Shown here piece after piece: positions 24,101-54,358 of a stretch of DNA of 64,000 bases. The position numbers and the translations under genes are program-made. Under the pieces are notes generated by a model. The model ran no database searches. It saw only the letters and a list, made by a program, of their open reading frames with translations, and was not told the origin of the DNA. The stretch's first letter is position 1. Each line of letters begins with the position of its first letter. Origin of the DNA: Malacoraja senta (taxonomy: Eukaryota); NCBI GenBank assembly GCA_038087875.1, contig CM075981.1, positions 992,001 to 1,056,000 of the forward strand, written 5' to 3'.

Positions 24101-27100
24101 TGCGGTGCATTTCCTCCAATTTCCGGTGTTGCTCGCTGTGCCCATGGAGGAGACGCAGGACAGAGAGGTCAGATACGGAATGGGAGGGGGAGTTGAAGTG
24201 CTGAGCCACCGGGAGGTCAGGTAGGTTATTGCGGACCGACCGGAGGTGTTCGGCAAAACGATCGCCAAGCCTCCGCTTGGTCTCACCGATGTAGATCAGC
24301 TGACATCTAGAGCAGCGGATGCAAGAGATGAGGTTGGAGGAGATGCAGGTGAACCTCTGTCGCACCTGGAACGACGGCTTGGGTCCTTGAATGGAATCGA
24401 GGGGGGAGGTGAAGGGACAAGTGTTGCATCTCTTGCGGTTGCAAGGGAAAGTACCCGGGGAGGGGGTGGTACGGGAGGGAAGGGAAGAATTGACAAGGGA
24501 GTTACGGAGGGAGCGGTCTTTGCGGAAGGCAGACATGGGAGGAGATGGGAAGATGTGGCGAGTGGTGGGGTCACGTTGGAGGTGGCGAAACTGACGGAGG
24601 ATCACTTGTTGTATGTGACGGCAGGTGGGATGAAAGGTGAGGACGAGGGGGACACTGCCCGTGTTGTGAGTGGGGGGATGGGGAGAGAGAGCAGTGTTGC
24701 GGGGTATGGCAGAGACCCTGGTGCGAGCCTCATCTATGGTGGAGGAGGGGAACCCCCGTTCCCTGAAGAATGAGGACATTTTGGATGCCCTGGTGTGGAA
24801 CGCCTCATCCTGGGAGCAGATGCGGCGTAGACGGAGGAATTGAGAGTGGGGGATGGAGTCCTTACAGGAAGCAGGGTGGGAAGAAGTGTAGTCCAGATAG
24901 CCATGGGAGTCAGTAGGTTTGTAGTGGATGTCGGTATGAAGTCTATCACCTGCGATGGAGATAGTGAGGTCAAGGAATGGTAGGGAAGTGTCGGAAATGG
25001 TCCAGGTGTATTTGAGTGCCGGATGGAAGTTGGTGGTGAAGCGGTTGAAGTTAGTCAGTTGTGTGTGGGTGCAGGAGGTGGCACCAAAACAGTCATCGAT
25101 GTAGCGGAGGTAGAAGTCGGGGATGGGGCCCTGGTACGTATTGAACAAGGATTGTTCTATGTACCCGACAAACAGGCAGGCGTAGCTGGGGCCCATGCGT
25201 GTGCCCATAGCTACGCCTTGTATTTGGAGGAAATGGGAGGAGTCAAATGAGAAGTTATTGAGGGCAAGGACCAGCTCCGCTAGTGGGAGGAGGGTGTCAG
25301 TGGCCGGGTATAGGTTGCTTCTTCGGTCGAGGAAAAACCGGAGGGCTTCGAGACCATCCTGGTGGGGGATGGAGGTGTGCAATGACTGGATGTCCATGGT
25401 GAAGATGAGGGGGTGAGGGCCTAGAGAGTGGAATACGCGCAGATGACGGAGAGTGTCAGAGGTGTCTTGAACATAGGTAGGGAGGGATTTAACCAAGGGG
25501 GATAGGATGGAGTCGAGGTAGGCGGAGATGAGTTCGGTGGGGCACGAACAGGCAGAGACAATCGGTCTACCGGGACAGTCAGATTTGTGGATTTTGGGGA
25601 GAAGGTAAAATCGGGCCTTGCGGGGCTGGGGAACGATGAGGTTGGAGGCTCGGTCGGGCAAGGCGTGGGAGTGGATGAAGTCGGTGATGGTGCTGGAGAT
25701 GGTGGCCTGGTGCTCGTTAGTGGGGTCATGGTCCAGCGTTATGTAGGAGGAGGTGTCCGAGAGTTGGCGCGTGGCCTCAGCTTTGTAGAGATCGACGCGC
25801 CAGACTACCACGGCACCTCCCTTGTCGGCGGGTTTGATAACCCAATCTAGGTTGTTGCGGAGTGAGTCGATGGCAGTGCGTTCAGGGGGGGAGAGATTGG
25901 AGTGAGACAGGGGAGTGGAGAAGTTGAGGCGGTTGATGTCACGGCGGCAGATTTTGATGAAGAGTTCTAAAGCCGGAAGGCTACGAGGGGGGTTCCACGA
26001 GGAGGGGGTGCGTTGGTGATGGGGAAAAGGGTCATCAGTGGGGGGCGAGGACTCCTTCCCATGGAAGTGCGCTGTGAGGCGGAGGCGACGGTAGAAGCGT
26101 TCCAAGCCAAGGAGGGCGCGGAACTCATTGAGGTGGGGACGGAGGGGGGCAAAGGTAAGAACTCTGCTGTGGACAGACCGTTCGATGTCGGAGAGGGGGA
26201 GGTCGGGGGGGGGGGGGTGGTGAACACCCAGCAGGGATGGGGTTTGGGGCCGGAGGAAGGCAGGTGGGTGGAATGGGGACAAGGCGATGTGTGGTGGGGG
26301 GGTGGTGGTGGGTGTTGGGGGGGGGGTGGGTGGTCAGAGGGTGGGGGGGTGAGAGGGCTGTAGTGTGGGTGGGGAAGAGAAGGGGTCCCATAGTTGGAGA
26401 AGGATGGGGAACTAACACTGAGGTAACCAGAAATAGGCAGACTAGCGCTAGGACCCAGTGGAGTGAAACCCAGGAGGGTGGGAGTGAGCAGCGTGGAGGC
26501 TTCAGGCCCAGTACACAGACCAGTCTGCAGGTGAGGCGACGGCTGCGGGCTGCTGGAGGGAGGTTCAGTGGCGAGGGTCGGCGGACCCGACGGTAGGAGT
26601 CCTCGAGCAGTGGAGTCGGGGTCGGCGGGGCTAGTAGATTTGTGTTAAGTAGATTTGTCCTGTACATTTTCTGAAGATTTTTCCTCTCAGTTTCAGGTGG
26701 ACTGTGGGCAAAGAAATATGTAGGAGGAGTTGTGGGAACAAATATCACAATCGATTGTCACTATAATGCACGGTACCGCTCACACATTAAATACTGGTGT
26801 CATGGGTGGACTATCGCGTGTTCAATTGTAGTGAAAACAAATGGGCAACGCGGACGGAGCGGAAGAGTGTCAATCACAGATAACCAGACACAAGGAATAT
26901 TTACTGTGACTGTGGAGGGTCTTTACTATGGAGATACAGGATGGTACAGATGTGGAATTACTACACCTGGCGTTGATACATTGTTTAACGTTCATCTCCA
27001 AGTATCTGAAGGTACGTTTTACATTTATACCAAGCCAATTAACCGGTAAACCTGTACGTTTTTGGAGTGTGGGAGGAAACCGAAGTTTTCAGAGAAAACC

Positions 27101-30100
27101 CACGCAGGTCACGGGGAGAATCTACAAACTCCAGACAGACAAGGCCCCGTGGTCATGGTCGAACCCGGGTCCCTGGCGCTGTAAGGCAGCAATTCTACAG
27201 CTGTACCACCGTGCTGCCCTAAATGATGTACCAAAGGGATCAGTGCCGGGATCACAATGCTGTTTGGCCGAATTCTGTTCTTACCCCTCCTGGGAGTTTA
27301 CAGATGACGCCCCTGGATCTTGAATAATGACGAAACGGCAAACAGGGAATTGTCTTTTATTGTGTAGGAAAGAAGTGCAGATGCTGGTTTAATCGAAGAT
27401 AGACACAAAATCTGTAGAGAAGATAGATGCGTCACTGGGTGGCGCCGAGATGGCAGCCTCGCCAAATCCTGTGTGTTATTTCAACATTTTTGTTATTTTT
27501 ACTGTTTCAAAAATATATGTTTTAATGTTTCTCGGTATCTTTTTATGTTGTGTGGTGTGGGAGGGGGGAATAGGGGGAAACCGTTTTCAGTCACTTACCG
27601 AGACGGAGATGTGATCTTTCCCCGTGTCACGTCTCCGTCCCCTCCCCGCGGCCTAACAACTGGATGGATGTGGCCTTTCCTGGAGACCGGCCTGGAGCTT
27701 CAAGCCTCCAGCGCGAGGCGGACTTTAACATCGCGGAGCTGCGATCCTTTGCTGAGGATCGCTGTGGAAGTGCCCCGACCGTGGGGCTTGTGGACTTTAA
27801 CACCGTGAAGCCGCGGTCTCCAGTGAGAAAAGGCCGATTTAAAAAGTTTAAAAAAAAATAAGTTGTACACGAAACGTATTATGTTGCATATCATGATTAA
27901 GATGTATGTACATTGCTTCTAATAAAAAATAAATAAATAAATAAATAAAAGAAAAGGCCGACTTGGGAGCTCCATGACGCGGAGTGTTTCCGTTCTGCCC
28001 CGACGCCGGAGTCTCCATCATCCCGACGAGAGGGCTTGAACATCGGGCCGTCGGCAGAGGCAGTGCTGAGGGTTCAAGGACAAAGGAGGAAGATGACTGA
28101 ACTTTGTTGCCTTCCATCACAGTGAGCCATGATGATTCCACTGTGGTGGATGTTTATGTTAAAACTATTGTGTATTACGTTATTTTTTTCAACTTGTATG
28201 GCTGTATGATAACTCAAATATCACTGTACCTTAATTGGTGCACGTGACAATAAATGTGAACTTGAACTTGAAATGCTGGAGTAACTCAGCGGCACAGGCA
28301 GCATTCTGGAGGGAAGGAATGGGTGACGTTTCGGCCCGAGACCCATCGTCAGACCCGAAACTTCACCCATTCCTTCTCTCCAGAGATGCTGCCTGCCCCG
28401 CTGGGTTACTCCAGCATATTTTGTCTATCTTTAATCGACTTTTATTTCCTTTTCTCAACAGTACCTAAATCTAATTCTGTATCGTCAACACCAGTAGCAT
28501 TTACTTCAACTACAAAAGTAACATCCGAAAACAATCATCAGAAAACCCCTGCGCCCGGTTTCGATAACAGGTATAATTTTCACTTGCTCAAGTTTTGATT
28601 GGCCTTGCTTTTCAATTTGAGAGGTGGAGACACAAGGAACTGTTGAAACACACATAGATACATAGATAGATAGACAATAGGTGCAGGAGTAGGCCATTCA
28701 GCCCTTCGAGCCAGCACTGCCATTCAATGTGATCATGGCTGATCATCCACAATTAGTACCCCGTTCCTGCCTTGTCCCCATATCTATTGATTCCGCTAGC
28801 CCTAAGAACTCTATCTAACTCTCTTTTGAATTTATCCAGTGAATCGGCCTGCACTGCCTTCTGAGGCAAAGAATTCCACAACTCTCTGGGTGAAAAGGTT
28901 TTCCTCATCTCAGTTCTAAATGGGCTACCCCTTATTCTTAAAATGTGACCCCTGGTTCCGGACTCCCCCAACATCGGGAACATGTTTCCTGCATCTCGCG
29001 TGTCCAATCCCTTTGTTAAACTTGGTAGGATATTGACACCCACCACTAGCCACATCTTCCCATCTCCACCCCTTTCTGCTTTCTGCAGAGACCGTTCCCT
29101 CCGCATCTCCCTGGTTAACTCATCCCTTTCCACCCAAACCACCCCTCCCCGGGTATTTCACCTGCAACTGCAGGAGATGCAATATCTGTCCATATACCTC
29201 CCCCCTCGAATCCATCCAAGGACCCTGACTGTCGTTTCAGGTGAGGCAGAGGTTCACTTCCAGCTCCTCATCTACAGTTGCAGGTGTGGACTCCTATATA
29301 TCGGCAAGAACAAGCGCATGCTTGGCGATCGTTTCACTGAACTCCTTCGCTCAGTCCGCCTAAACCTACCTGATCGCCCGGTGGTAAACACTTTAACTCC
29401 CCCTCCCATTCCCACGCTTAAATTTCTGTCCTGGGCCTCCTCCTTTATCAGAATGAGGCCCAGCGCAAATTAGGGGCAACAGCACCTCATATTGGGCAGT
29501 TTACACCCCAGCTGTAAGAATATTGACTTCTCCAACTACAAGTATTCCTTGCTTTCCCTGACTCTCCATCCCACTCCCTTTCCAGTACTCCGACCAGTCT
29601 GACTGTGCCCAATTATATTGTATCTTTGTTTACTTTGTTGTTACCGTCTCCCAGCTAACAATGATCTATTCTACATTTTCCTTGATCTCCACCCCCTTTG
29701 TTTCATTTTCACACCTTACACTTCCTTATTTCTGTATCTCCTCCCCGAAGAAGGGTCTCTATCCCAAACGTCATCCACTCCTTCTCTCCAGAGATGCTGC
29801 CTGTCCCGCTGAGTTACTCCAGCATTTTGTGTCTATCTTCGGTTTAAACCAGCATCTGTAGTTCCTTCCTACACTTATTGACTGTCCACTGGTTTTGAAC
29901 AAGGGGTGTTTCCTTTGTAAATCTGTAAGCTGTGAGTATTTGTAAACCAATCGGCAGATATATCTACCACTGACAATGCCACTGGCCAGATCTCATACAC
30001 AATTAGTTTAGTTTTATTTTAGTTTAGAGATACAGCATGGAAACAAATCCTTCGTTCCTCCGAGTCCACGCTGTCCATCGATCACCCTTTCATATTAGAT

Positions 30101-33100
30101 CTATGTTATCTTGCTTTTTCATCCACTCGCTACAAATTAAGGGCAATCTACCAAGGCCAATTAACCCACAACCCCGCATGTCTTTCTGATGTGGGAGGAA
30201 ACCGGAGCGCCTGGAGGAAACCCACCATCACAGGGAGAATATGAAAACTCCTTACAGCCAGCATCTGTAGTCTAGTTTGAACCTGGGTCTCTGGTGCTGT
30301 AAGGCAGCAAATCTATGCTGCGCTACTGTTGGGTTGAGTTGGGTTTATTCTTTATCCAGCATCACAATCGTTGGTCGTTATCGCACTGCTGTTTGTGGAA
30401 CTTGCTGCGGGCAGATTGGCTTTGGTGTTTACCACATTACAGCAATGTCTGCACTCCATTCACTGGGCTTGACTTATCCTGAGCTCATGAAAGATACCTT
30501 GCAGATGTTAGACTTTTGTTCTTTACCAAAGGATAGGAATCAATGATGAAACAAGAGTAACCTTTTTGCTTTCTCTGTCCCATAGACACATAATTATGCT
30601 CAGCATTGCTGGAGTTCTTCTCGTCCTGCTCTTTGCTGGTCTACTTTGGTGCCTAAAGCGTAGACAAAGGAGTGAGTTTCTATGTTTCCTTCATCCTTTC
30701 ATGATGTATGTGATCATTTCTTGCAGAGAGAGATACAGCACGGAAACAGGCCCTTTGGCACACCGAGTTCATGCTGACTATCAACCACCTGTTTACTCTA
30801 GTCGTACAATAATCTTATCGGGTCTGAAGAAGGGTCCCGGCCTGAAATGTCACCCACCCTATTCATCCAGAGATGCTGCCTGATCCACTGAGTTATTACT
30901 TTGTATCTATCTTTGGTGTAAACTAGCATTCTTAACAGTCATGAAGAAGGGTTTCGGCCTGAAACGTTGCCTATTTCCTTCGCTCCATAGATGCTGCTGC
31001 ACCCGCTGAGTTTCTCCAGCATTTTTGTGTACCTTCGATTTTCCAGCATCTGCAGTTCCTTCTTAAACACTTCTTAACAGTCATTCCTAACTGTCACTGT
31101 TTGTCGTTGTCACTTGCGGAGTGGGCGGAGCACCAAGGCAAAATCCTTGTTTGTGAATCATTGGCCAATAAACTTATTCATTCATTCGTTCATCTGCAGG
31201 TCCTTTCTACACACTAATCTTATCCAACTTTGTTCTCTCCATGTTGTTATCAATTCCCCCAAGATTCTACCCCTCACCTATACACTAGGGGCAATTTACA
31301 GTGGGCAATTAACCTACAGACGTGCATGTCTTTAGGATGTAGGGGGAAACCGGAGCACCCGGAGGTAACCCACGCAGTCACGGGGAGAACAGGCAAGACT
31401 CGAGGTGAGGATTGAACCCGAGTCTCTGGCACTGTGAGGCAGCAGCTCTACAGGCTGTGGTACTGTGCCACCCTATGTTAAGAGATTGTAGTCGGTTCTT
31501 GATAACCAAGACCCAGAGTTGAGGTGTTTTTATTTAGTTATATGTAGCACAGAAGAACAATGTAACTGCCAGGTGACAAGGGTAATATTTAATAGGAACC
31601 TGAGGGGCAATGTTTTGGAACCTCAGGGGGAACGTTTTGGAACGAGCTGCCAGAGGAGGTAGTTGAGGCAAGTCCTACAACAACATTTAAAATACATTTG
31701 GACAGGTACATGAATAGGAATAGTTTGTGTGGGAAGGAACTGCAGATGCTGGTTGAAACCGAAGAGAAACACAAACAGCTGGAGTAACTCAGCGGGTCAG
31801 ACGGCATCTCTGGAGAAAAAGAATAGGCGAGTTCTCGACTCCAAACGTCACCTATTCCTTTTCTCCAGAGATGCTGTCTGACCCACTGAGATACTCCAGC
31901 TTTTTGTGTATATCTTCAATAGGAATGGTTTAGTGGGATAGGGGCCAAAAGTGAGCAGGTTGGGCTAGTGTAGATTGAGCAATTTGGTTGGCATGGGCAA
32001 GGTGGGGCAAAGGGCTGCTTTCTATGCTGTTTGAGTCTTAGTTCGAGTCCATGGCACAAGAACTAAGATAAGAGGTTAATGAGACGTGAGATTTACTTGC
32101 ACCCCACCATCCCAGTTATCAAAAACTGGACCATGGCAAATTAGCTAAGATAAACACATAATGCTGGAGTAACAGCAGGTCAGGTGGCATCACTGGAGAA
32201 AAAAGAATGGTGAAGTATCGGGTTGGGATCCTTCTTCAGTCTGAGTTACTCCACCAGTTTGTGCCTATCTTCGGTAAATATCAGCATCTTCAGTTCCTTT
32301 CGACACATCTCAGTAAATTAGCTGTTGTGTTTGAAAGTGTGGATTAGGATTTCTCAATAATCTGCCGTAGTTCGTTATATACAGCACCGGGCCTGTACTC
32401 ACTGGAGTTTAGAAGGATGAGGTGAACCTCATTGAAACTTACCAAATAGTGAAAGGCCGAGATAGAACGGATGTGGAGAGGTTGTTCCCACTAGTGGGAG
32501 AGACTAGGACCAGAGGGCACAGCCTCAGAATAAAAGGGTGTATCTTTAGAAATGAGTGGAGGATGAATTTCTTTAGCCAGAGGGTGGTGAATCTGTGGAA
32601 TTTATTGTCACAGACAGCTGTGGAGATCAAGTCATTGAGTATTTTTAAAAGCATAGATTGACGGGTTCTTGATTAATGGGCTAATCAATCGTGGGTGATC
32701 ACATTTTCCCTCTCCATTCTCCCCTTAAACGTTGGTCCCTATTAATCAAGAAGAGTCCTTTCTGATCCTTTTTGAACTTTCAGTACAGTAACCTGACCAG
32801 AATTGTGCTGCTTGCAGCAATTTGGGCTTGTGGTGCCCCTGTGGTTCTCATGAATAAAAGTATAGGAAGGAACTGCAGATGTTGGATATACACCAAAGAC
32901 AGATTGAAGATGCTGGAGTAAATCAGCAGGACAGGCATCTCTGGAGAGAACGGTCTGAAGAAGGGTCTCAACCTGAAACGTCATCCATTTCTTCTCTCCG
33001 GAGATGCTGCCTGTCCCGCTGAGTTACTCCAGCATTTTGTGTCCATCTTCGGTTTAAACCAGCATCTGCAGTTCCTTCCGACTCTACATGTTTAAAAATG

Positions 33101-34051
33101 TTTCTGACATGCTCCTTTCAATGTTAACATTGTGTTTTCCAGAATCAGAGGGGAACAAACCTCCCAGAGCATCTAACAATGAAATGCAGGTAAAGACGGC
33201 AAAGTATGAATTCACCGTGTATTTGAGAACTTACAAAATTCTGTAATTCAACCTCACTAATCTGCTTCAATGGTTCTATGGTTCCTTTATCATCAAATGC
33301 ATCAAGGTGCATCAAGGTTATTTTATGCATACAGATCGGATGATTATTTCAAAGGAACGGAGTACTAATTGTGGATGATCAGCCATGATCACATACACAG
33401 CAGCTCGTTCCATACACCCACCACACTTTGTGTAGAAAGTTACCCCTCGGGTTCCTATTAAATCTTTCCCCCCTCATCATAAACCTATATCATCTGGTTC
33501 TCGATTCTTCTACTCTGGGCAAAAGGCTCTGTGCGTCTACCCTATCTTTTCCTCTCATGATTTTGTACACCTCTATCAGATCACCCCTCATCATCCTGCG
33601 CTCCAAGCGTCCTGGCCTGCTCAACCTCTCCCTATAGCTCAGGCCCACGAGTCTGGGCAACATCCTTGCAAATCTTCTCTGCACCCTTTCCAACTTGACA
33701 GCATCTTTCCTATAACATGGTGACTAAAACTGAACACTAATCATCAGACTTGGATTCTCTTTTGTATTTCAGGAATTACCAGCAGGAAAAGGGAGCACAG
33801 TTTATGCAACACTGTCGGACATTCAAAGCAACAAGGAAGCTGCCCATTGTTCTAATCAACATCAAACTGTGTATGCAGGAGTGCAATTTCAAAGCAAATC
33901 GACAGGGTCTCACTCCAGTACTGGGGAGGACAATGTCACCTACTCAGAAGTTACATCTCAAAGCGTCAGCCAAATTGCCCGTCAGAAAGCTCCTTCTCCT
34001 CACAATCCACAGAACACTGTGCAGAGTATTTATGCCACTGTGACTTCTTAG
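21102..34051 (+). CDS. Gene B (spliced, 6 exons): CD300/pIgR-like (MDIR-like) single-V-domain inhibitory receptor, 299 aa (292 aa from the second ATG)
   Basis: Exons 21102-21159, 26691-27011, 28462-28570, 30586-30671, 33143-33189 and 33773-34051. All introns are GT-AG with compatible phases (1,1,2,1,0). The total is 900 nt with no internal stop. Confidence 0.9.
22640..22930 (-). mobile_element. HE1-like SINE
   Basis: Reverse complement of the SINE consensus seen elsewhere in the window. Confidence 0.8.
23794..26640 (-). mobile_element. Penelope-like retroelement (RT plus GIY-YIG endonuclease), near full length, antisense in gene B intron 1
   Basis: Uninterrupted 747-codon ORF at 24039-26282 with KPADKGGAVVVW, PGRPIVS, GVAMGTRMGPSYA, YLRYIDD and CSRC..IYIGETKRRLGDRFAEH. 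The 3' pLTR is at 23794-24040. TSD TGTGTTAAGTA at 23783-23793 and 26641-26651. Confidence 0.95.
23893..23920 (-). ncRNA. Minimal type I hammerhead-ribozyme-like core in the Penelope pLTR
   Basis: Minus strand reads CUGAAGA-A-GGGU[UUCG]GCCC-GAAAC-AUU. Core and helix II are present, but the helix III palindrome is ACAU rather than ACGU in this copy. Confidence 0.6.
26691..27011 (+). CDS. Gene B exon 2, V-type Ig domain of the CD300/pIgR/TREM type
   Basis: CCTCTCAG acceptor and GTACGT donor, 321 nt, phase 1-1. Contains TIDCHY, KYWC...C (second Cys pair), RVSITD, FTVTV and DTGWYRC. Confidence 0.95.
27438..28270 (+). mobile_element. GC-rich ~0.8-kb non-autonomous retroelement with TGACAATAAA-(AACTTG)n tail
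   Basis: Homologous to 11180-11975 (-). The 3' terminal TCACTGTACC...GTGACAATAAA resembles the LINE tail at about 39160-39205. Confidence 0.7.
28462..28570 (+). CDS. Gene B exon 3, Ser/Thr/Pro-rich stalk (VPKSNSVSSTPVAFTSTTKVTSENNHQKTPAPGFDNR)
   Basis: CTCAACAG acceptor and GTATAA donor, phase 1 to 2, in frame with both flanking exons. Confidence 0.82.
28665..29010 (-). mobile_element. CR1 3' end
   Basis: Reverse complement of the CR1 C-terminus and tail seen at 13000-13320. Similar pieces lie at about 9620-9965, 14340-14680, 32385-32680, 33430-33730, 43200-43440, 44350-44735 and 53060-53300. Confidence 0.8.
29030..29875 (+). mobile_element. Penelope 3' fragment (decayed GIY-YIG plus pLTR)
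   Basis: HIFPSPPLSAFCRDRSLR...CRCGLLYIG...LGDRF, followed by the pLTR. Confidence 0.82.
30586..30671 (+). CDS. Gene B exon 4, transmembrane helix (RHIIMLSIAGVLLVLLFAGLLWCLKRRQR)
   Basis: CCCATAG acceptor and GTGAGT donor, phase 2 to 1. About 21 uncharged hydrophobic residues followed by a basic stop-transfer sequence. Confidence 0.92.
30943..31070 (+). mobile_element. Solo ~128-nt Penelope pLTR unit with 14-bp TSD
   Basis: TTCTTAACAGTCAT at 30929-30942 and 31071-31084. Confidence 0.82.
33143..33189 (+). CDS. Gene B exon 5 (KSEGNKPPRASNNEMQ)
   Basis: TTTTCCAG acceptor and GTAAAG donor, 47 nt, phase 1 to 0. Confidence 0.88.
33773..34051 (+). CDS. Gene B exon 6, cytoplasmic tail with TVYATL, TVYAGV, VTYSEV and SIYATV
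   Basis: TATTTCAG acceptor, phase 0, 92 aa to TAG. ITSM/ITIM consensus motifs. Confidence 0.92.
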   Translation, partial: ELPAGKGSTVYATLSDIQSNKEAAHCSNQHQTVYAGVQFQSKSTGSHSSTGEDNVTYSEVTSQSVSQIARQKAPSPHNPQNTVQSIYATVTS

Positions 34052-34244
34052 ATAAACCATTGAGTAATTGATTGATTGATTGGTACTTTATTACCACATG
34101 TGACATGTCACGGTGATAATTATTTTGTTTTGCGTACCATAAACAAGGTATACAAAGAGTCACTATGTATCGGGCGCCGACAGTTACAAACTATTCATTA
34201 CAGTCCCTATTGGTCCCCCTTTGTTCTTGGCTCCCCCACCCACC

Positions 34245-34438
34245 CCAACCCCACGCCATGTCCCCCTTTGTTAACATACCCCCACCCCACGCCACGCCAT
34301 GTCCTCCTTTGTTAAAACACCCCCACCCCACTCCATGTCCCCCTTTGTTAACACCCCCCCACTCCATGTCCCCCTTTGTTAACACACCCCCACCCCATGC
34401 CATGTCCCCCTTTGTTAACACACCCCCACCCCACGCCA
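34245..34438. repeat. C-rich minisatellite, about 5 copies of CCATGTCCCCCTTTGTTAACA(C)nACCCCAC
   Basis: Units of about 30-38 nt are visible directly, starting about 200 nt after the gene B stop. Confidence 0.9.
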
Positions 34439-35905
34439 GGTCCGCTATGTTCTCGGCAGCCCCCTACCTGGACCAGTGCTGTTTGTTGCCCCATCTTTAT
34501 GCCATGGTTGCATTGAGGTTCCTCTGCTGTAATCAACACATCTGCTTACTTTGAAGAAGGGTCTCTATCTGCAATGTCACCAATTCCATCTCTTAAGAGA
34601 TGCTGCCTGACCCACTATGTTATTCCAGAACTTTTTCTCTTTTTTTTTGCAAACCAGCTTCTGCAGTTCCTCATTTTTCCACTCCCTTCCTTGTTACCAA
34701 TGATCAGCAATTGCCATTAAATTTCTGAATCTGGGTCAGCTATGCAAATAGCAGCCATTTTGCTCAATGCATTGAATGATGCAGTCTCCTTCCTCACACC
34801 CATCCCCAACATAGACTGAGAGGAGTTATGTTACAGTGCAAACATCTTCTCTCTACAACTAAAGGTTGTGGGTTCAAATCTCATCGCAGCACCTGAGCAA
34901 GTAACCCACCTGAACACTTGAGTGCAGAATGAGCGAGTGTATCGATCTACAAAGGCACCTCCTGCATCACAGGAGACACGAAAAAAAAGGAAACAAAAGT
35001 TGGAGATGGCAAATATTGCATATTGAAGATAATGAATGTGTACTTGCGCAGAGAATGTTTCTGCTTCCAGGAAAAGCCACGCTGAGATAATGTTGAATAT
35101 TGAGATTAATAAAACACAATAAAGCTTTTTTTTTCTCTTCACTTGTGATAATTTTTTACTCGAGAGTTAAGGGTGTTTTATTGTCATATGTCCCGAAATA
35201 GAACAATGACATTCTTACTTGCAGCAGCACAACGGGTTTGTAAACATAGTTTGAGTCAGTTTCAGTTTAGTTTATTGTCACGTGTACTGAGGTACAGTGA
35301 AAAGGTTTTGTTGCGTGCTAACCAGTCAGCAGAAAGACAATACATGCTTACAATTGAACCATTACAGTGTATAGATACATGATAAGGGAATAACGTTCAG
35401 TGCTAGGTTAAGCCAGCAAGTGCTCAATGGATAAAATAACAAGCAAACAAAACAATGTTCAACGAATTAATAAAAATAGTGCCTATTGGGATCCATATTC
35501 AAACCACTCCAAAAGTCCTGGGTTATGAGCTGCATGACAGGGTGAGCTGTGAAGAGGATATAGAGGGTCATTGTGGAATGCAGTTTTGTTAAGTGAATGC
35601 AGAAGGATGTGGGAAATGCAACATATGAGACAAGAGGTGAAGAAAGCAGAAATGCTGACCGGTTTTATAAACGGCAAGAGATTGAAAGGTCTTCATGTTT
35701 AGTTTAGAGATACAAATTGGAATCAGGCCCTTTGGTTCACCGAGTCCGCACCACCAGCAATTAACACTACCCTACACACATTTGGGACAATTTATAATTT
35801 TACCAAGCCAATTATCCTGCACCTGTACGTCGTTGAGGAAAGGAGGAAACCGGAGATCTCGAATAAAATCCCATGTGGTCACGGGGAGTACGTACATACT
35901 CTATA

Positions 35906-39205: not shown

Positions 39206-39434
39206 CTTGCCAACTGGACTGTGAATGACATCCTGGCCAAAGGTTTTGTGAAATGAACAAGACATTTTTAAAAACTTACAATGTTGTTGAGGTTTAGTCT
39301 GAAATCCAATCCCCCTTCCAACCAGTAAGGCTTGCTGGGGAAGTCTAACTTTTGGCAATTGTGGGTCAGGTTTATACTGGGTTACTTAGCTGGTTGCGAG
39401 AATCAAACTTGGAATGAAGCAAAACCCCTCAGGA

Positions 39435-39728: not shown

Positions 39729-40298
39729 ATCGGCCACCATTAACAAGCTCCAGACATGAGATGAGACTCGCCTTGAGATCAAAGTCCAGGCCAGGATCAC
39801 ACCCATCACAGTTCAGAACAAATCCCGCCCACATCGGCATGTCTTGCCCACCACAAGTTGCCCGCCAATGAGCCATTCCTTGTCCAAGGGTGATCAGAGA
39901 GATGGGAGTGGGTCTGTGCTACCTGTCCTGAAGACCTCTGTAGCCAACATGCAGCATAGACATGGTGGTCCTCTCTCAACTACAGAAAGAGATGATTCCA
40001 CAGGTGTTGGCACAATCCCTTCTGACGTTGTCCAGTTATCTGGACCTCGTACGTTCATGAGTCATGGGAGGAGCATGGAGTCATAGGGTAACTGCATTCT
40101 ATCATATGATGAAAATTCACTATAGATTCATGCAATTATTTATTCCCAGGGAGAACTTCTAGCTGTTTGTCATCAATTGGCTCACTCTTGTTTCACAATC
40201 AGGTTTCCTGTTGCTTTCTTCATCATTTATATTGTAACATTTATTTTCGATGGGCATTTAGTTCTCTGGACTAAGAGCTGAACGATAAACGGCCCAGC

Positions 40299-40356
40299 AT
40301 GGGGTCTGCATCTAAAACGATGTTGGTGCCAATTCTTCTCATTTGTTTCTTGCCCG
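40299..40356 (+). CDS. Gene C leader exon L1, signal peptide MGSASKTMLVPILLICFLP
   Basis: AGCATGG Kozak context, second ATG at 40320, phase-1 GTGAGT donor. Same length and promoter motifs as gene B exon 1. Confidence 0.85.
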
Positions 40357-43300
40357 GTGAGTAACATTCAGAATTGGACATTCTGATAATTAGTATTAGT
40401 TTGCGCGTTATGCTGTTTCCATTGCCGAGATGAAGTGTTATTAATGTTTAATGTTTTATGTATCATTCCTAACTGTCACTATGTCATGTTGTCACTTGCG
40501 GGCGGAGCACCAAGGCAAATTCCTTGTATGTGAATACTTGGCCAATAGACTTATTCATTCATTCAGATCGTTAAAAATGTGTAGACACGTAAAGATGCAA
40601 AATGTTCAGCACATAATAATATGACCAGTATTGGAATATAGTCTCGTAAATACCTTCCCTCTGTAACACGGTACTACACAAATCATCACAATGTATCCAA
40701 TGTATACTTCAAATAGCCCTTGCTTTACCTTTGTCTCCATCACCTCCTCCTTCCAAGTTCTCCCACCAGTCTTACTGTCTCTGACTACATTCTATCTCTG
40801 TCCTGCCCACTCCCCTGACATCAGTCTGAAGAAGGGTCTCCACCCGAAACGCCACCCATTCCTTCTCTCCAGAGATGCTGCCTGTCCCGCTGATTTACTC
40901 CAGCATTAGTGTCAACCAGCGACATGATTATTGATTTCTCTAACTGCAAGGAACCCTTGCATTCCCTCTCTCTCCGTCCCTCCCCCACCCTAGTCTTCTT
41001 GCTAATTTCACCGTTTTTTATTCCTTCGTTATCACCTCATCCCCAGCAACAATGGACCATTGTGGACTCCACCTTTCTTGAGTTATAGATGCAGGCTCTG
41101 CATTGTTCTGAGGGCTGGATTTACTTATAACCTTGACAAGCTTAAGCTTAGGGCCTCGAGATCTAGGGGGGGGGGGGGGGGGGGGCTCGCAGAGCCGGAT
41201 TCACCACTAGTTGAAGCCTAGGGCCTCAAAATCTAGGGGGCTGCGGCCAAGGCAGGACACCTGCCGTTCAATTCTGGGCAGGCCGCCCATTCTATCTCTC
41301 TCTCTGTGTCACTCTCCGTCTCCGCCCGCCATCCGTATCTGTGTCCGGGCCGCCGGGACTCCGCTCTCCGCTCGCTCCTCATCTGCCGTCACGGCCGGCC
41401 TCCTTGCACATGCGCACTGCTACGGCCAGCACATTCTCCCCCTTGCACATGCGCACAACCACGGCCAGCACATCATTAGCCGCCCTGCGCATGCGCACTG
41501 TGATGGCGCTGGGCACTTTCCCCCAACCCAAAACGTCACCTATCCATGTTCTCTGGAGATGCTGCCTGGCCCATTGAGTTACTCCAGCATTATATGCCTG
41601 TTTTTGAGAAATAGGAAGTTGTGAGGTTGATAAGAAGATTTGAACACCAGTGTAAATATTTTGAAACCAAATCATTGACTCTACACGTTAGGGTTGTTAT
41701 GACTATGCAGGGTGGGTTATCAGATCTGTGAAGTGTGGAGAACCATGGTCAAGTCCAAATCCACCCACATGTCACAGTGCCAGGGTGAAGGGTGAGTGGG
41801 GCAGAGCAGGGCGGGGCACTGGCACCAGAGTTAAACTCATAGTCATATAGCACAGAAACAGGCCCTTCTTCCCAACTTGACCATGCTGACCAAACTGCTT
41901 ACCTACACTAGGTACACAAAAATGCTGGAGAAACTCAGCGGGTGCAGCAGCATCTATGGAGCGAAGGAAATAGGCAACGTTTCAGGCCGAAACCCTTCTT
42001 CACTAGTTTAGTTTAGAGATACAGCATGGAAACTGGCCCTTCAGCTCACCGAGTCCGCACCAAACAGCAATCCCCATGCATTAACACTATCCTACACGCA
42101 ATAGGGACTATTTACACCTGTTCCAAGCCAACTAACCTACAAACCTATACGTTTTTGGATTGTGCGAGGAAACTGAAGATCTCGGAGAAAACCCAGGGGG
42201 AGAACGTATAAACTCTACAGACAGCACCCGTAGTCGGGATCAAACCCGACTGTAAGCGCTGTAAGGCAGCAGCTCTACCACTGCGCCATGGAGCCGCCCT
42301 AGTCAACGTACCAGTTGCCCGCGTTTGACCCATCTCCTTTTTATTCTGCCATATATTGGTAAACATCCAGTTTTCAACCTCAGTCAGGAAGTAGTGTCTC
42401 GGCCGGAAAACAAACATGCACTTTTTGCCTCCACAGATGCTGCCCGACCCGTTGAGTTTTTCAGGTGTTCTGCCTATTGTTCCAGATTCTAGTACATACA
42501 ATCTCCTTTGTCTTCTCCTTCACACAACCCTAATCCTACCTCAACAATGTTATCTCACAGAAGCTGAAGGGTACATGGAAGGAGCATGTCCAGAGGAGGT
42601 AGTGGAGACAGGTACTATTAACAACATTTAAAAGCACTAGGACATGGTACGTAGATACGAAAGGTTTGTACGGACAGGGGTCAAACGAAGGCCTGATTTT
42701 TATGGTTGCGAAGCCGTAGAGTTGTTGCCTTACATTGCATAACGGCGCCAGATACCCGGGTTCGATCCTGGCTACAGGTGCTTGTCTGTACATAGTCTGT
42801 ACTTTCTCACAGTGACCTGCGTGGCTTTTCTCCGAGAACTTCAGTTTCCTCCCACACTCCAAAGACGTACAGTTTTGTAGGTTAATTGGATTGATGGAAA
42901 TGTAAAAATTTGTGTTAAAGTGCGGGGATCACTGGATTGTGCGGACTCGGTGGGCTGGAGGGCCTGTTTCCGCACTGTATCTCTAAACTAAACTAAACTA
43001 AAGAGGGACTAGCGTACATGGGACATCTTGATCGGCATAGGGCAAGCTGCTTCCATGCTGTATCACTCTATGATTTCATGAATCGCATCCTCAAACTAAG
43101 CTTTACCCAGTCTCCAATGCTCAAGTATTTGAATTGTCCTTCGAGGAGTTTATCTGGTGATGTGAGTGGACTTATCTGATCGTGTTTGTCAATAAACAAT
43201 AGACAATAGGTGTAGGAGTAGGCCATTTGGCCCTTCGAGCCAGCACCGCCATTCAATGTGATCATGGCAGATCATCCACAATCAGTACCCCGTTCCTGCC

Positions 43301-44009
43301 TTATCGCCATATCCCTTGACTCCGCTAACTTTAAGAGCCCTATTTAGCTCTCTCTTGAAAGTATCCAGAGAACCGTCCTCCACCACTCTCTGAGGCAGAG
43401 AATTCCACAGACTAACAACTTTCTGTGTGAAAGTGTTTCCTCATCTCCGTTCCGTTGGTGTCTTATTTCTCCTGCGTAACGTTTCAACACATGAGAAGCT
43501 GAGGAAGGCTGGACAAATTAGTGACGCGCATTTTGAGGTGGGTAAACAGATCACAAGTTCACACGTTCCAGGAGTAGAATTTGGCCATTCAGCCCATAGA
43601 GTCTACTCCGCCATTCAAACATGGCTGATGTCTGCCTCTTAAACCCATACAAGTTCAGACACAGTGTGCCCGCATTTGGGGAAGGGGGTTGAGGGTGTGG
43701 GTAAGAGAATGTTTGCAGTGGTGGACAGAGCGCCAGTGAAGTGGGCAAACGTCACCAGGATGAAGCAAAGCTTCGAGGAGATGCTCCAATCCAGGCAACT
43801 GGAGAGCATTGCAGCCCACTCCTGATAGGTGCATTGTCGGTGGTGAGGAGGCTGGGGGTGGTGGCAAATGAGTCACCAAGTTATTCTTGAACCACTGTAA
43901 AGTCGTTTCCTGAGTAAACGGAAATTGCCTGTTTGACTTCTGTTGTGAATGAGGAAGAGGACAACTCAAACGCAGTGCAGGGACCAAACCGATCCAACGT
44001 AGCCAAGAC

Positions 44010-44106
44010 ATGGTGGTGGGACAGGGAGAATTCACCCACCAGAAACGGCCCAGATCCAGGGGAACAGTCGCTCTGCTGGTTCTTGTCGCTTTTGATCTCA
44101 TACCAG
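44010..44106 (+). CDS. Candidate second leader exon L2, MVVGQGEFTHQKRPRSRGTVALLVLVAFDLIP
   Basis: GACATGG Kozak context, basic n-region plus hydrophobic h-region. Ends Pro plus a phase-1 G and a GTAAAT donor, as the other leaders do. In frame with V exon 54038. Confidence 0.55.
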
Positions 44107-45094
44107 GTAAATCGTTGTTTTACAAAATGCTCTGTTCTTTAGAATTATTTACTGGTGCCTTGAATTATTTGTAACCAAGGACGTCTGTCTCTGTACTGTG
44201 TGGGGAGCTGATGATAAATTGCTCAACACTCGTTAGTTCCTGTAGAGACTTCCATCAGCGGTTGTTGTCGTGTTGTGTGCAGCCAAATTGCACACAGCTA
44301 GCTCCCCGTGGAGAAGGGAGATAACTACCTAAAGCTTGCCTTGTGGACCTCACTGAAACTTACCGAATAGTGAAAGGCCTGGATAGAGTGGATGGGGTGA
44401 GGATGTTTCCACTAGTCGGATAGTCTAGGACCAGAGGTCGCAGCCTCAGAATTAAAGGACATTCCTTTAGGAAGGAGATGAGGAGGAATTTATTTAGTCA
44501 GAAGGTGGTGAAACTGTGGAATTCATTGTCGCAGAATGCTGTGGAGGCCGTCAATAGATATTTCATAGGCAGAGATAGATAGATTCTTGATCAGTACTGG
44601 TGTCAGGAGTCCTGGGGAGAAGGAAGGAGGATTGAGTTGAGAGGGAAAGGTAGATCAGTCATGATTGAATGGAGGAGTAGACTTGATGGGCAAAATTACA
44701 TAATTCTGCTCCTAATGTACTAATGAACTTATGATCTGTTCTTCAGAATTATTTACTAGCACCTTGAATTATTTTGAGCCACAGAGCAGACTACTGGGCT
44801 ACGCGCTGCTCAAGATAAAGTGCTTGCACACTTGTTCTTTCCTGCACTAATGACTTGTTGTGATGCTGTGCGCAGTCAAATGGCACACCGCTAACTCCCT
44901 GTAGAAAATGACCCGACAGCTGGCCTTGTTGATTATGGGTGTAGGGGTAACTCTTGCCCTCAGAACAGAGAGTTTGCTCCACTATTCTGGTGCAAACTAT
45001 CTCCAGGTGAACTTTCTCAGTGACTTGACAGCAGATCAGCTAAATGCTTTACCCCTTGCATATCTCTTGACTTCCTCCATCCCTGACTCTTGGT

Positions 45095-49980: not shown

Positions 49981-51365
49981 TATGTTTGGTAACCCTTCTG
50001 TCCCCTTTGTCAAATGCAACTTCTGCCAATGTCACTGATTATCAAAGCCATAATTTATGGTCTTGAACTCAATGTCTTTCTGGGCCATTACAGGCAGCCA
50101 ATTAGTGGTCACACATTTTGGTGGGTGTGGAAGGTGGGGGAGGGAGGGGGGGATGGGGCTGAGGCAGGGGCAGGTAGGTGACAGGTACACCCGGAGAAAG
50201 TGAGGGATGATGGGAGGAAGATGAGGAGGGGGGAGATTTGAGACTAGAGGCCAGTATGTGGTAGGGGAAAAGTACAAGGGAATAAACAGGTTCAAATGAA
50301 TTAGATGGAGATATCTGATGGTGAGTAGACTTACCGAGCAACAATACATCCAACACTACCACACTCTCTCTGTGGGCAGCACGGTGGCGCAGGGGTAGAG
50401 TTGCTGCCACACAGCTCCAGATACCCAGGTTCGATCTTGACTACAGGTGCTGTCTGAACGGAGTTTGTACGTTCTCCCTGTGACCATGTGGGTTTTTTCC
50501 GCATGCTCCGATTTCCTCCCACACTCCAAAGACGTGCAGGTTTGTAGGATAATTGACTTCACTAAAAATGTACATCGTCCTTAGTATGTGTAGTGGGATA
50601 GAGTTAGCTAGCTAGCGTGGACTTGATGGGCAGAAGATCCTGTTTCTGCGCTGTATCTTGAAAGTAAAGTGTAAAGTCAGTTCTTCAAGGCAGATTCATC
50701 CTAGATCTCTGTAGTGGAAAGAAACCCTAGAATGTACTGACCCGGGTGGGGGGAAGTACAGTCATGGCTGGTCCAACAATGACAATGACTGCACTTCAGA
50801 CTAAAATCAATGGGGAACAAGGGCTGAAAAGGGCCATGCATGGAGAGGGAGCGCAAATTCGTGGATGATCAAGGAGGCTTCCCCTCCCCTGCCATTACCA
50901 CCCCCCCCCCACCACCATCCCTCTCTGCCAGCTTTCCCCTTCCTACTAAAGTTTGCCTGGATAAAGGTCCTGACCCGAAACGTCACCTGCCCATTCCCTC
51001 CACAGATGCTGCCTGATCTGCTGAGTAACACTTTTTAAAAATACAAATACTATTACTCAGAAACAAAACAAACATACAAAAAAAAGTAACACGATCAAAA
51101 CTGCCCTTTGTAGCATTTTACAAAACAACAGCCATCAATTTAAAAATAACGTGGTCATCATCGGTATTACATTCGACCTCCCGCGGTGACCAGCGTTCAC
51201 GCAAGGCGTCCAAAGTCGCTGAGTTACACCGGGACTTTGTGATTAGCGCAAGGGTAAGTGAATGTCCAGACATGGGTTGGACCATTCATCGTTGGTTTGG
51301 GCAAGAGAGGGTGGGCCAGCAAACGCTGTGATAAGTGGATTTGTTCCTGTACATTTTCCTCTCAA

Positions 51366-52951
51366 TTTCAGGTGCACTGTTGGCAAAGCAATATACAAGA
51401 GGATTTGTGGGATGAGCGATCACAATCGATTGTCATTTTGGAGATGAGTAGCGCTCACACACAAAATACTGATGTCTTTGGAGGAGTCAGTTTAAGAAGG
51501 AACTGCAGATGCTGGAAAGTCGAAGGTAGACAAAAATGCTGTAGAAACTCAGCGGGTGAGGCAGCATCCAGGGGGCGAAGGAAATAGGCGACGTTTCGGG
51601 TCGAGACCCTTCTTCATACTGATGTGGGGTGGGGGGACGCGAACAAGAAAGGAAGAGGAGGAGACAGTGGGCTGTGGGAGAGCTGGGAATGGGAGGGGAA
51701 AGAGGGAAAAAGCGGGACTACCTGAAATTGGAGAAGTCAATGTTCATACCGCTGGGGTGAAAACCACCCAAGCGAAATGTGAGGTGCTGCTTCTCCAATT
51801 TACAGTGGGCCTCACTCTGGCCATGGAGGAGGCCCAGGAAAGAAAGTTCAGATTCTTAATGGGAGGGGTAGTTGAAGTGCTGATCCACCGGGACATCAGG
51901 TTGGTTATTTCGAACCGAGCAGAGGTGTTAGGTGAAGCGATCGGCAAACCTACGCTTGGTCTCGCCGACGTAGAGCAGCTGACACCGAGAGCAGAGGATG
52001 TAATAGATGAGGTTGGAGGAAGTGCAGGTGAACCTCTACCGCACCTGGAAAGACTGCTTAGGTCCTTGGATGGAGTCAAGGGGAGAGACAAGTGTAGCAT
52101 TTTGCTGCGGTTGCAAGGGAAAGTACCAGGGGAGGGGGTGGTTTGGGTGGGAAGGGACAAATTGACCAGGGAGTTACAGAGGGAACGGTCTCAGCAGAAA
52201 TCGGAAAGGGGAGGAGATGGGAAGATGTGGCCAGTGGTGGGATCCCATTGGAGGTGGCGAAAATGTCGGAGGATTATCTGGTGTATGTGACGGCTGGTCG
52301 GGTGGAAGGTGCGGACAACGGGGACTCTGCCCTTGTTATGTGGGGGGGGGGGTGGGGAGTGAGAGCAGAGTTACGTATAGAAGAGACCCTGGTGAGAGCC
52401 TCATCTATAGTAGAAGAGGGGAACCCCCGTTCCCAAAAGAATGATGACATCTCTGATGGTTGGAGGAGCCCACCTCCAACTGGGCAGTTTACACCCCAGC
52501 AGTATGAACATTGACTTCTACAATATCAGGTAGTCCGCTATCTCCTTCTTTCCCCTACCCTTCCCAACTCTCCCACAGCCCACTGTCTCCGCCTCTTTCT
52601 TTCTTCTACCCAGCACGAAACAGGCCCTTCTGCCCTCCATGTCCACCAGCGATCCCCGCACATTAACACCATCCCACACCCACTCTGGACAATTTTTACA
52701 TTTTTTACCAAGCCAATTAACCTACAAACATGCACGTCTTTGGAATGTGGGAGGAAACCGAAGATCTCTGAGAAAACCCACGCAGGTCACGGGGAGAACG
52801 TACAAACTCCGTACAGACAGCACCCGTAATAAGGATCGAACCCAGGTCTCTGGCGCTGCATTCGTTGCAAGTCAGCAACTCCACCGCTGCACCACCGTGA
52901 CTGCCCAAACAAATGGGCAACATGGACGGAGTGGAAGAGTGTCAATGACAG
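51366..52951 (+). pseudogene. Dead partial V exon (51366-~51492 and ~52907-52951), split by Penelope and SINE insertions
   Basis: Acceptor mutated (CTCAA instead of CTCAG). Reads SGALLAKQYTRGFVG*AITIDCHFGDE*RSHTKY*C (three stops) and resumes as TNGQHGRSGRVSMT. Confidence 0.88.
51493..52610 (-). mobile_element. Penelope 3' fragment with an inverted pLTR-side piece at its 5' end (about 52465-52610)
   Basis: SNPSKDL...SSALGVSCSTSARP frames of the GIY-YIG region. 52465-52610 is the reverse complement of about 51650-51780. Confidence 0.82.
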
Positions 52952-54037
52952 CTCAAGGGTAACCCAGACACGGGTGGGACCATTCGGCCCATCGTTGGTT
53001 AGTGGAAGAGTTGGTGGGCAGCAAACGCTGTGTTAAGTACTTACTGGGAGAAACCGATATGCATCGTTAGGCCGTTTAGGTCTGAGATCAGGAAAAACTT
53101 TTTGACCCAGAGAGTTGTGAATCTGTAGATTCTCTGTCACAGAAGGCAGTGGTTGTTTTCAAGAGCTCGAAGGGCTAACGAAATCAAGGGATATGGGGAA
53201 AAAGATGGAACTGATTTTAGATGATCAGCCACGGTCATATTGAATGGCGGTGCTGGCTCGAAGGGCCGAATGGCCTACTCCTGCGCCTATGTTTCTATGT
53301 ATCCAGTTGGGAGTGCGCGGTGGTGGGCACAGGGAAGATGGGGGGGGGGGTGGTGGGGTGGAGCGAGCTCTGTCCTTCCATTCACAACTGCTAGATTTTC
53401 TGGGAAGCCACCAACCGACACTAAGACCGGGAGATGCCGCTCCCAGCAGCGTGACGAGCGATAGACGAGGAAACGCCAGCAATGCTGAGGGGACAGAAGA
53501 GACAATGTTGGTTTGGAAGATAGATACTAAATACTGGAGTAACTCAGCTGATCAGACAGCATCTATGGAGCTAAGGAATAGGTGCCATTTCGAGATCTAG
53601 ATCCTACTACAGACCGAGAGTCAGGGGAAAGGGAAACTGAGAGATATAGACGGTTGTGTAGAGAGAAATAGAGCAAATGAATTAAATATATGCAAAAAGT
53701 AAAAATGATAAAAGAAGTATGCCATTGCTGTGTAGTAAGTGAGAACTAGTTACAGACAACGAGATTCAACAAGAAGTTGGTACGACTCATGTGGGGGGGG
53801 GAGATGGAGAGAGAGGGGATGCAAGGGTTACTTGAAGTTAGATAAATCAACATAACATACCATTGGGGTGTAATCCACTGAAGGGAAATATGAGATGCTG
53901 TTTCCTACCACTAGGTTGGAGATGGCAGAGACGTTTCCAATTGTAACGAGGGCGTCCATTCAGGTGAATGTTGTCCTGATCATTCCGAATATGCACCCGA
54001 TTCCTCGTGTTCATTTTCAGCTGATTTGTCCTCTCAG

Positions 54038-54358
54038 TTTCAGGTGCGGTGTGGGGAAAGACATATGTAGGAGGAGTTGTGGGAAGAGCGGTCACGGTTG
54101 ATTGTCACTATGAAGCAGAGTACCGCTCACGCCCAAAATACTGGTGTCACGGGTGGACTCGCCAGTGTGGAGTTTTATTGGAAACAAATGGGCAACACGG
54201 ACGGAGAGGAAGAGCGTCAATCACAGATAACCCGACACGAGGAATATTTACTGTGACTTTGGAGGATCTTCGCTCTGGAGATACAGGATGGTACAGCTGT
54301 GGAATTGCTGCACTTGCCTTGGATCCATTGTTTAACGTTCATCTCCAAGTATCTGACG
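54038..54358 (+). CDS. Gene C V-type Ig exon (CD300/pIgR/MDIR-like)
   Basis: CCTCTCAG acceptor and GTACGT donor, 321 nt, phase 1-1. Contains TVDCHY, KYWC...C and DTGWYSC. 71/107 aa identical to the gene B V domain. Confidence 0.94.

Follow-up and report, generated by a model that had tools for sequence, protein, structure and literature searches.

Probable recurrent diversifying selection on the CD300-type V domain of a modular domain immune-type receptor cluster in the skate Malacoraja senta

A stretch of 64,000 nucleotides from the skate Malacoraja senta (contig CM075981.1, positions 992,001 to 1,056,000, called the window here) carries two genes, B and C, whose V domains raise a question: why do they differ at so many residues and at so few silent positions? 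The V exon of gene B lies at 26691-27011 and that of gene C at 54038-54358, both on the forward strand. The exon of gene B encodes a V-set domain of the CD300/pIgR type (Pfam V-set, E=4.6e-11) and the exon of gene C a domain of the same V subfamily (E=3.1e-10). Both exons, as read from the sequence, have an AG acceptor, a GT donor and phase 1, and phase 1 applies to both ends of the exon in gene B. Their identity is 66.7% at the amino-acid level and 84% at the nucleotide level. An earlier interpretation made from the letters alone (the sequence-only reading) had counted 36 residue differences against two purely synonymous codon differences, and had proposed either pathogen-driven diversification of the binding face or homogenisation of the framework by gene conversion. 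The comparison was repeated in frame from 26690 and 54037 over 108 codons without gaps. It gave 70 identical codons, 2 silent and 36 residue-changing, so the count was correct; the silent differences are the ACA/ACG (codon 20) and CAT/CAC (codon 38) already named. The 72 same-residue codons found here instead of 71 reflect only a split end codon. All six peptides that had been quoted were found on the forward strand where they had been placed. The 51 nucleotide differences are distributed over codon positions 1, 2 and 3 as 20, 20 and 11. Multi-nucleotide changes had also been reported, and 11 of the 38 changed codons indeed differ at two or three of their bases; differing bases are adjacent in 13 cases, where 7.8 were expected (P=0.03). 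Several of the differences are conservative I/V/L exchanges within strands. N-glycosylation sequons are present at N18 and N65 in B and absent from C, and B is less acidic than C.

Formal tests of the B/C pair were carried out with the third-position changes inside altered codons counted. By the Nei-Gojobori method (NG86), 6 silent differences over 77.5 silent sites and 45 replacement differences over 246.5 replacement sites gave a replacement rate (dN) of 0.209 and a silent rate (dS) of 0.082, that is, a ratio (omega) of 2.56. The Yang-Nielsen method (YN00) gave 2.24 and Goldman-Yang maximum likelihood 3.05, and the overall range across methods was 2.2-3.4. A pairwise likelihood ratio test (LRT) of omega=1 against free omega under the Goldman-Yang model (GY94), run with our own code at three codon-frequency settings, gave p=0.004-0.009. 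A Fisher test on the counts gave p=0.016 and a codon bootstrap gave Z=2.9. The claimed excess of dN over dS is thus formally supported, and an omega above 1 survives the counting of third-position changes. Among codons with exactly one difference, 25 are replacements and 2 are silent (binomial P=0.01-0.03). Therefore, the replacement excess does not rest on codons hit several times.

A protein search over 1.8 billion protein representatives returned 2,445 relatives of the two V domains. The nearest ones belong to skates, rays and sawfish; their names are 'polymeric immunoglobulin receptor-like' or 'CMRF35-like molecule', or they are uncharacterised. The matches include members 2 and 5 of the MDIR (modular domain immune-type receptor) family of the clearnose skate Rostroraja eglanteria (MDIR2, P0182; MDIR5, P0160). 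The V domain of gene C is 80-81% identical to the Leucoraja protein P0178 and to MDIR2 (80% to MDIR2). The MDIRs are a skate multigene family resembling CD300, TREM and pIgR (PMC3031540, citing Cannon et al. 2006). Both identity to named MDIR proteins and a place in a syntenic skate cluster were found, and B and C are assigned as two genes of the skate MDIR cluster. The original MDIR description of 2006, by Cannon and colleagues in Immunogenetics (volume 58, page 362), is said to have been based on complementary DNA (cDNA) and bacterial artificial chromosomes (BAC) and to have dealt with family structure and phylogeny. The skate MDIRs are of the same organism group and gene family as B and C, and they form a large multigene cluster with mixed architectures and members that bear ITIMs (inhibitory motifs of the immunoreceptor tyrosine-based type). 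Gene B shows the features of the inhibitory members, namely cytoplasmic ITIMs and an uncharged transmembrane helix, and inhibitory signalling is predicted from these motifs.

The excess was then set against a neutral yardstick. The window is collinear with clusters of Amblyraja radiata (CM021389.1, locus L004), Leucoraja erinacea (CM054030.1, loci L001 and L002) and Rhinoraja longicauda (locus L003), with a non-coding identity of 88-93% over many kilobases, and the codon data set was drawn from the window and these three other skates. By synteny, the orthologs of the B exon are L004:14062 and L002:14388, and those of the C exon are L001:12485 and L004:40201. The flanking introns of the orthologs differ by 6.3-8.4% (Jukes-Cantor distance, JC, 0.066-0.089), with JC 0.066-0.081 for the introns of gene B. 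The silent divergence of the V exons, 0.048-0.081, equals the intron value within error. Therefore, the silent sites are not unusually constrained, and dS in the V exon is low mostly because the neutral rate is slow. Ortholog pairs have a dN of 0.153-0.164 in B and 0.102-0.119 in C, and the value for B (0.15-0.16) is twice the divergence of the flanking introns. Expressed as proportions of differing sites, replacement divergence in B (pN 0.139-0.147) exceeds intron divergence (0.063-0.077) with Fisher p=6e-4 and 3e-5, and silent divergence (pS) is no different from the intron. The V exon orthologs differ at 24-28% of their residues over only 6.6-8% neutral divergence. Omega was above 1 in 21 of 21 pairwise comparisons among the 7 syntenic V exons, with a range of 1.1-3.4. 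As controls, other exons were compared with their orthologs; the tail exon of B gave omega 0.33-0.39 and the second Ig (immunoglobulin) exon of C gave 0.4-1.1.

Site models were fitted to 16 intact V exons of the subfamily, taken from the window and seven loci. Our own codon-likelihood program was used, and its M0 likelihood matches that of IQ-TREE to three decimals (-2137.411). The M0 omega of the 16 exons was 1.55, and omega=1 was rejected (p=0.002). Twice the log-likelihood difference (2dlnL) was 74.4 for M1a against M2a and 73.7 for M8a against M8. The comparison of M7 with M8, which the sequence-only reading had named as a check, gave 78.7 and favoured the class under positive selection. 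The site classes placed 29% of the sites at omega 4.3 and 25% at omega 0.085. The likelihoods of M1a and M2a were the same with free or proportional branch lengths. With the 7 syntenic V exons, the M0 omega was 2.26 and 2dlnL for M1a against M2a was 45. Overall, 25-30% of the V exon sites evolve at omega below 0.1. Twenty sites had a posterior above 0.9: 5, 9, 10, 12, 28, 40, 42, 43, 45, 54, 60, 79, 80, 91, 92, 93, 95, 98, 100 and 102.

For the understanding of where these sites lie, an AlphaFold model of the V domain of gene B was built from a 58-sequence alignment. It has a predicted local distance difference test score (pLDDT) of 95 and the strands A, A', B, C, C', C'', D, E, F and G. The best match of a Foldseek search against the Protein Data Bank (PDB) was mouse CD300lf, with a template modelling (TM) score of 0.92-0.94, a root mean square deviation (rmsd) of 1.2 A and 36% identity. 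Further matches were human CD300f/IREM-1 (TM score 0.92), CD300a (0.84), the first domain (D1) of pIgR (0.80-0.85) and TREM2 (0.82). The V-set core C23, W36, D82, G84, Y86 and C88 is conserved across the 58 sequences, as in a V-set of the CD300/pIgR type. Two more cysteines, C37 and C44, occur in both B and C, are nearly invariant in the family and align with cysteines of pIgR D1; they make up an extra C-C' disulfide, Cys37-Cys44, in the pattern KYWC...C. The variable stretches correspond on the model to the B-C loop (residues 26-33; complementarity-determining region 1, CDR1), the C-C' loop closed by Cys37-Cys44 (39-44) and the F-G loop (91-96; CDR3). The head group of phosphocholine and the norovirus P domain are both bound by CD300lf in a cleft that lies between CDR3 and the CC' loop and has the Cys36-Cys44 disulfide as its floor; CDR1 is more distal (PMC6166816). 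An aspartate in CDR3, D96, is conserved in B and C and is a candidate counterpart, at loop level only, of the metal-binding Asp98 of CD300lf.

CDR1, CC' with the beginning of strand C', and CDR3 hold more than their share of the B/C differences: 14 of 25 residues differ there against 22 of 83 elsewhere (P=0.007). The selected sites follow the same trend, with 9 of 25 residues in CDR1, CC' and CDR3 against 11 of 83 elsewhere (P=0.015). A concentration of changes in loops equivalent to CDRs had been claimed; the enrichment bears this out, but only 9 of the 20 selected sites fall in these three loops. The others are in strands A/A' (5, 9, 10, 12), strand G (98, 100, 102), the C''-D region (54, 60) and the E-F turn (79, 80). 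Along strands G (98, 100, 102) and A' (10, 12), the selected sites are interleaved with conserved residues of the core (V11, G13 and L103) and with the hydrophobic F99, V101 and V105. Therefore, these selected sites should point outward, and from the same sheet.

B and C are homologous only over the exon and its immediate borders. The homology reaches about 38 bp into the upstream intron and 6-8 bp past the exon end, with the same limits in Amblyraja and Leucoraja. The stub of intron on the acceptor side of gene B (26652-26690, forward strand) is homologous to 53999-54037 of gene C by blastn and MAFFT; a count by eye on the alignment gave 8 differences over the 39 bp. Together with the 6-8 bp downstream, it is the only homology outside the exon. 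Removal of a retroelement that lies in the intron of gene B left these limits unchanged. Since ortholog introns are about 92% identical, the introns would still align if the whole gene had been duplicated at the depth of the observed dS (about 0.08-0.10). Those of B and C do not, beyond these short borders. Therefore, the exon was copied as a module, or was homogenised over the exon only, before the skates diverged. The dS between paralogs was 0.074-0.091 within species and 0.065-0.127 across species (mean about 0.094), with 0.082 for B against C; between orthologs it was 0.040-0.081. B and C group with their own orthologs, and the two clades keep diagnostic residues across species. A GENECONV-like scan of the V exons found no pair that was significant after correction (B-C, p=0.069 uncorrected). 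The marks of ongoing concerted evolution were not found, as paralog dS within species is not lower than across species and only the pairwise homoplasy index (PHI) was weakly positive. Some mosaicism in the wider family is likely. The suggestion of framework homogenisation by gene conversion can thus be kept only as an old exon-scale event; recent or ongoing conversion did not hold up, given that dS is not lowered and no tract passes correction.

We consider it probable that recurrent diversifying selection acts on the CD300-type V domain of the skate MDIR cluster, on top of an old exon-scale spread of the domain between genes. Chance is unlikely, as the pairwise tests, the comparison of orthologs with introns and the site models agree. 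Diversifying selection, as the sequence-only reading had it, is the best reading of the B/C pair, the syntenic orthologs and the site models of 7 and 16 exons, whereas a pathogen as the driver is inferred only. Under this mechanism, about 30-40% of the V codons would take replacements 4-6 times faster than silent changes, with the fold-defining residues and the signalling tail conserved. The selected positions would concentrate on the CC' loop and CDR3, and also on CDR1 and the outward residues of the adjoining A' and G strands. The low dS would have two causes. One is a slow neutral rate in skates, with ortholog introns differing by 6.6-8.9%, and the other is a coalescence of the V exon copies that would be only about 1.3-1.5 times deeper than the split of the species. 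The V exon would have spread as a module between architecturally different genes, through exon-scale conversion or shuffling, before the skate divergence. We infer a ligand-binding role for the selected surface, with the selection driven by ligands that change, such as lipids of microbial or altered-self origin, or proteins through which pathogens exploit the receptor.

Several points weigh against this reading. More than half of the selected sites (11 of 20) lie outside the CD300lf-type cleft, and exposure and clustering were judged from strand periodicity and conservation, with the mapping onto CD300lf at loop level only. The replacement excess of the C orthologs over their introns is slight and not significant (pN 0.095-0.110 against 0.082-0.084, p=0.12-0.25). 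The tests of terminal branches are weak, with omega 3.1 for B (p=0.07) and 2.0 for C (p=0.35). M7 and M8 were fitted with branch lengths proportional to those of M0. PHI gave p=0.009 with a window of 10 informative sites and 0.084 at another window size; recombination can inflate the likelihood ratios of site models, and the p-values of these models are therefore to be tempered. In gene B the retroelement sits about 40 bp from the acceptor of the V exon. Gene C loses its 3' exons to an assembly gap and an inverted duplication, and it has no identified leader of its own. The sequencing runs found are low-coverage DNA, and B and C are known from genomic DNA alone. The two genes can be called only putatively functional in this animal.

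Exchange of sequence patches could give a similar picture in the absence of positive selection, if conversion kept the framework alike while divergent patches arrived from distant family members or dead copies; the replacement excess would then reflect mixed histories. The confinement of B/C homology to the exon with about 38 bp upstream and 6-8 bp downstream fits such an origin, as do the PHI value of 0.009 at the window of 10 informative sites and the clustered, often adjacent differences (13 pairs against 7.8 expected). Loop motifs also recur in paralogs, for instance TTPG/PGVD in L007:7137 and L006:11892, and conversion of an Ig domain or exon between the primate paralogs CD300A and CD300C has been reported (PMC12447643). 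Conversion, however, only shuffles variation that already exists, and with an omega of 1.55 in the pool of 16 exons the excess must originate within the family. Moreover, syntenic orthologs with flanks that are 88-93% identical also show dN above both dS and intron divergence. Paralog dS within species (0.074-0.091) is not below that between species (0.065-0.127), no pair passes the corrected scan, and the B and C clades retain their diagnostic residues across species. Mosaic conversion as the sole cause is therefore considered unlikely, and recurrent diversifying selection is preferred.

A loss of constraint, with one or both copies dying and the replacements neutral, is a very unlikely explanation. 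The retroelement about 40 bp upstream of the acceptor in B, the leader and 3' exons not identified for C in this assembly, a dead V exon between the two genes and the knowledge of B and C from DNA alone would all suit it. Neutral decay predicts an omega near 1, not 2-3, and omega=1 was rejected for the pair and for the family. Both exons keep their frames, their splice sites and C23, W36, C37, C44, D82, Y86 and C88, and omega is below 0.1 at 25-30% of the sites. The same pattern is seen in the orthologs that carry gene annotations in other skates. What decay looks like in this cluster is exemplified by the dead exon at 51354, and such loss of frame and core is not seen in B and C. Multi-nucleotide mutations are a known source of false positives in codon tests, and tandem mutations or a local bias misread by single-step codon models could in principle mimic selection. 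To this would belong the 11 of 38 changed codons with two or three differences and the excess of adjacent differences (P=0.03). Yet the codons with a single difference alone show 25 replacements to 2 silent changes (P=0.01-0.03), the excess belongs to the V exon and does not extend to gene B's tail exon, and codons with multiple hits are expected where 30-40% of the codons evolve fast. A mutational artefact can hardly account for the data.

A more far-reaching picture, in which we place little credence, would treat the V exon as a cassette of 321 bp with about 40 bp of intron on the acceptor side. This cassette would have moved between single-V genes with ITIMs and genes with a V and a C2 domain, after which the CC'/CDR3 pocket diversified. 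The cluster would then serve as a repertoire, encoded in the germline and held at the level of the population, of pockets that bind lipids or pathogens, and its variants would come from a targeted process (templated conversion of patches from live or dead V exons, or germline tandem-base hypermutation) instead of ordinary point mutation and selection.

Fast evolution of ligand-binding domains in paired and multigene immune receptors is already well known, and this cluster is no new kind of system. B and C add a new and well-supported example of a known phenomenon, in a receptor kind that is itself known. With mammalian CD300 (CD300lf/CLM-1 and CD300a, which are inhibitory through ITIMs and have paired activating members), B and C share the V-set fold and the C-C' disulfide, and gene B also the layout in which a single V domain is followed by a stalk, a transmembrane helix and a tail with ITIMs. 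The skate family is, however, an independent expansion in which the V domain is combined with other Ig domains, and the likeness is drawn at family level, not to any one mammalian CD300 gene. Among solved structures the best sequence matches are pIgR domains (profile E=4e-89 over five domains). pIgR itself has 2-5 tandem V domains of the pIgR type and a transcytosis tail and binds polymeric Ig, whereas gene B has a single V and an ITIM tail and gene C a V followed by a C2-like domain. Neither B nor C has the tandem domains of a bona fide pIgR, and the name 'pIgR-like' is an annotation by similarity only. In teleosts, PIGRL, DICP, NILT and SITR are lineage-specific clusters with activating, inhibitory or soluble members and CD300-like V domains (PMC3031540). 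Compared by description, these CD300/pIgR-like families are independent expansions in bony fish. Among living vertebrates with antibody-based immunity, cartilaginous fish are the oldest, and little work has been done on their clusters of innate Ig-type receptors. The V domain of the skate MDIRs would be a target of strong and repeated adaptive change, partly at the pocket that binds lipids and a virus in a mammalian homolog. The comparison of orthologs with introns, the site models and the exon-limited homology are results of the present analysis. They provide a concrete list of residues and gene pairs for testing recognition, and a clean case of flanking introns as a neutral yardstick.

The remaining exons of gene B are all on the forward strand. 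The leader (signal peptide) exon, MVSVDKTMWITILLIYSQP, is at 21102-21158, where tblastn gave 79% identity to the leader of P0043/P0053, and it is syntenic with L002 and L004. Downstream of the V exon, a stalk exon with approximate limits 28482-28577 was located by tblastn to residues 135-163 of P0043 and to P0002. The transmembrane exon (approximately 30566-30670), located from the list of open reading frames (ORFs) and by tblastn to residues 711-762 of P0002, encodes the helix IIMLSIAGVLLVLLFAGLLWCLKRRQR, which contains no charged residue. It is followed by a short cytoplasmic exon, ESEGNKPPRASNNEMQ, at approximately 33142-33189 (tblastn to P0002). The cytoplasmic tail exon (33767-34051, then a stop) is 83% identical to the C-terminus of P0002. 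By eye, the tail carries VTYSEV and SIYATV, which fit the ITIM consensus, and TVYATL and TVYAGV, which resemble immunoreceptor tyrosine-based switch motifs (ITSMs). With a leader, one V domain, a stalk, an uncharged transmembrane helix and an ITIM/ITSM tail, gene B is therefore predicted to be an inhibitory single-V receptor of the CD300a/CD300lf kind. The tail exon of a neighbouring gene A (15985-16257) is related to that of gene B; both are of ITIM type and end in ...SIYA(S/T)V(V/T)S. Against relatives, the tail of gene A has an omega of about 0.8-1.1, compared with 0.33-0.39 for that of gene B. A C-rich tandem repeat with a 36-bp unit (5.6 copies, 34241-34443) lies just downstream of the last exon of gene B.

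Gene C is predicted to encode a V domain of the B kind followed by a C2-like Ig domain. The second Ig exon (Ig_2/C2-like) is at 55536-55838 on the forward strand, with a Pfam Ig_2 match of E=1.5e-6 and 80-82% identity to P0053 and P0178. A leader exon of gene C's own was looked for and none was found. Beyond the second Ig exon comes an assembly gap of 200 N (56368-56567) and then the inverted duplicate. A (GA)22 microsatellite (55127-55170) lies between the V and second Ig exons. The Amblyraja radiata gene model P0053 (L004, 10001-45653) fuses the V exon orthologous to B with the second Ig exon orthologous to C, about 28 kb apart. This points either to splicing, long-range or alternative, that links neighbouring receptor genes or to a mis-annotation of the cluster. 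One of the sequencing runs, X1, gave an exact 122-nt contig that spans the intron-exon junction of the V exon of gene B (26676-26797), and this run is thus DNA, not RNA. Contigs of the DNA runs, from the same or a close organism, have other letters at 26741, 26803, 26814 and 26888 within this exon, which could be alleles or reads of a paralog; the T>C at 26803 would match the silent state of gene C at codon 38.

The retroelement in the intron of gene B is a lineage-specific insertion of 2.85 kb on the reverse strand (23794-26640), about 40 bp upstream of the acceptor of the V exon. Its ORF is intact on the minus strand (24039-26282, 747 aa), with a weak match to RVT_1 and a motif like GIY-YIG in the translation, and the element looks Penelope-like from these features. 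An 11-bp target-site duplication, TGTGTTAAGTA, lies on either side of it. In Amblyraja and Leucoraja the site carries no insertion; therefore, the element inserted recently, and it may have remained active.

Between B and C, tblastn located a dead V exon in two parts on the forward strand. The 5' part (51354-51476) has three in-frame stops. The middle part (52882-52950) is separated from it by retroelement and short interspersed element (SINE) sequence, seen as blastn repeat matches. The counterpart by synteny of the 5' part, and of the dead exon as a whole, is the intact V exon of the Rhinoraja 'CMRF35-like molecule 5' (P0174, L003:13017). This gene has been lost in the present lineage and kept in a related skate. 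L003:13017 was also considered as an ortholog of B and was rejected, as synteny pairs it with the dead exon at 51354.

The end of the window holds an inverted duplication of 7.4 kb, in which 37254-44685 is matched by 64000-56568 at 99.06% identity. It adjoins the N gap at 56368-56567 and reaches the window end, and it may reflect either a genuine inversion-duplication of recent date or an assembly error. Two leader exons are copied within it, 40299-40355 as 60955-60899 and 44010-44114 as 57245-57141.

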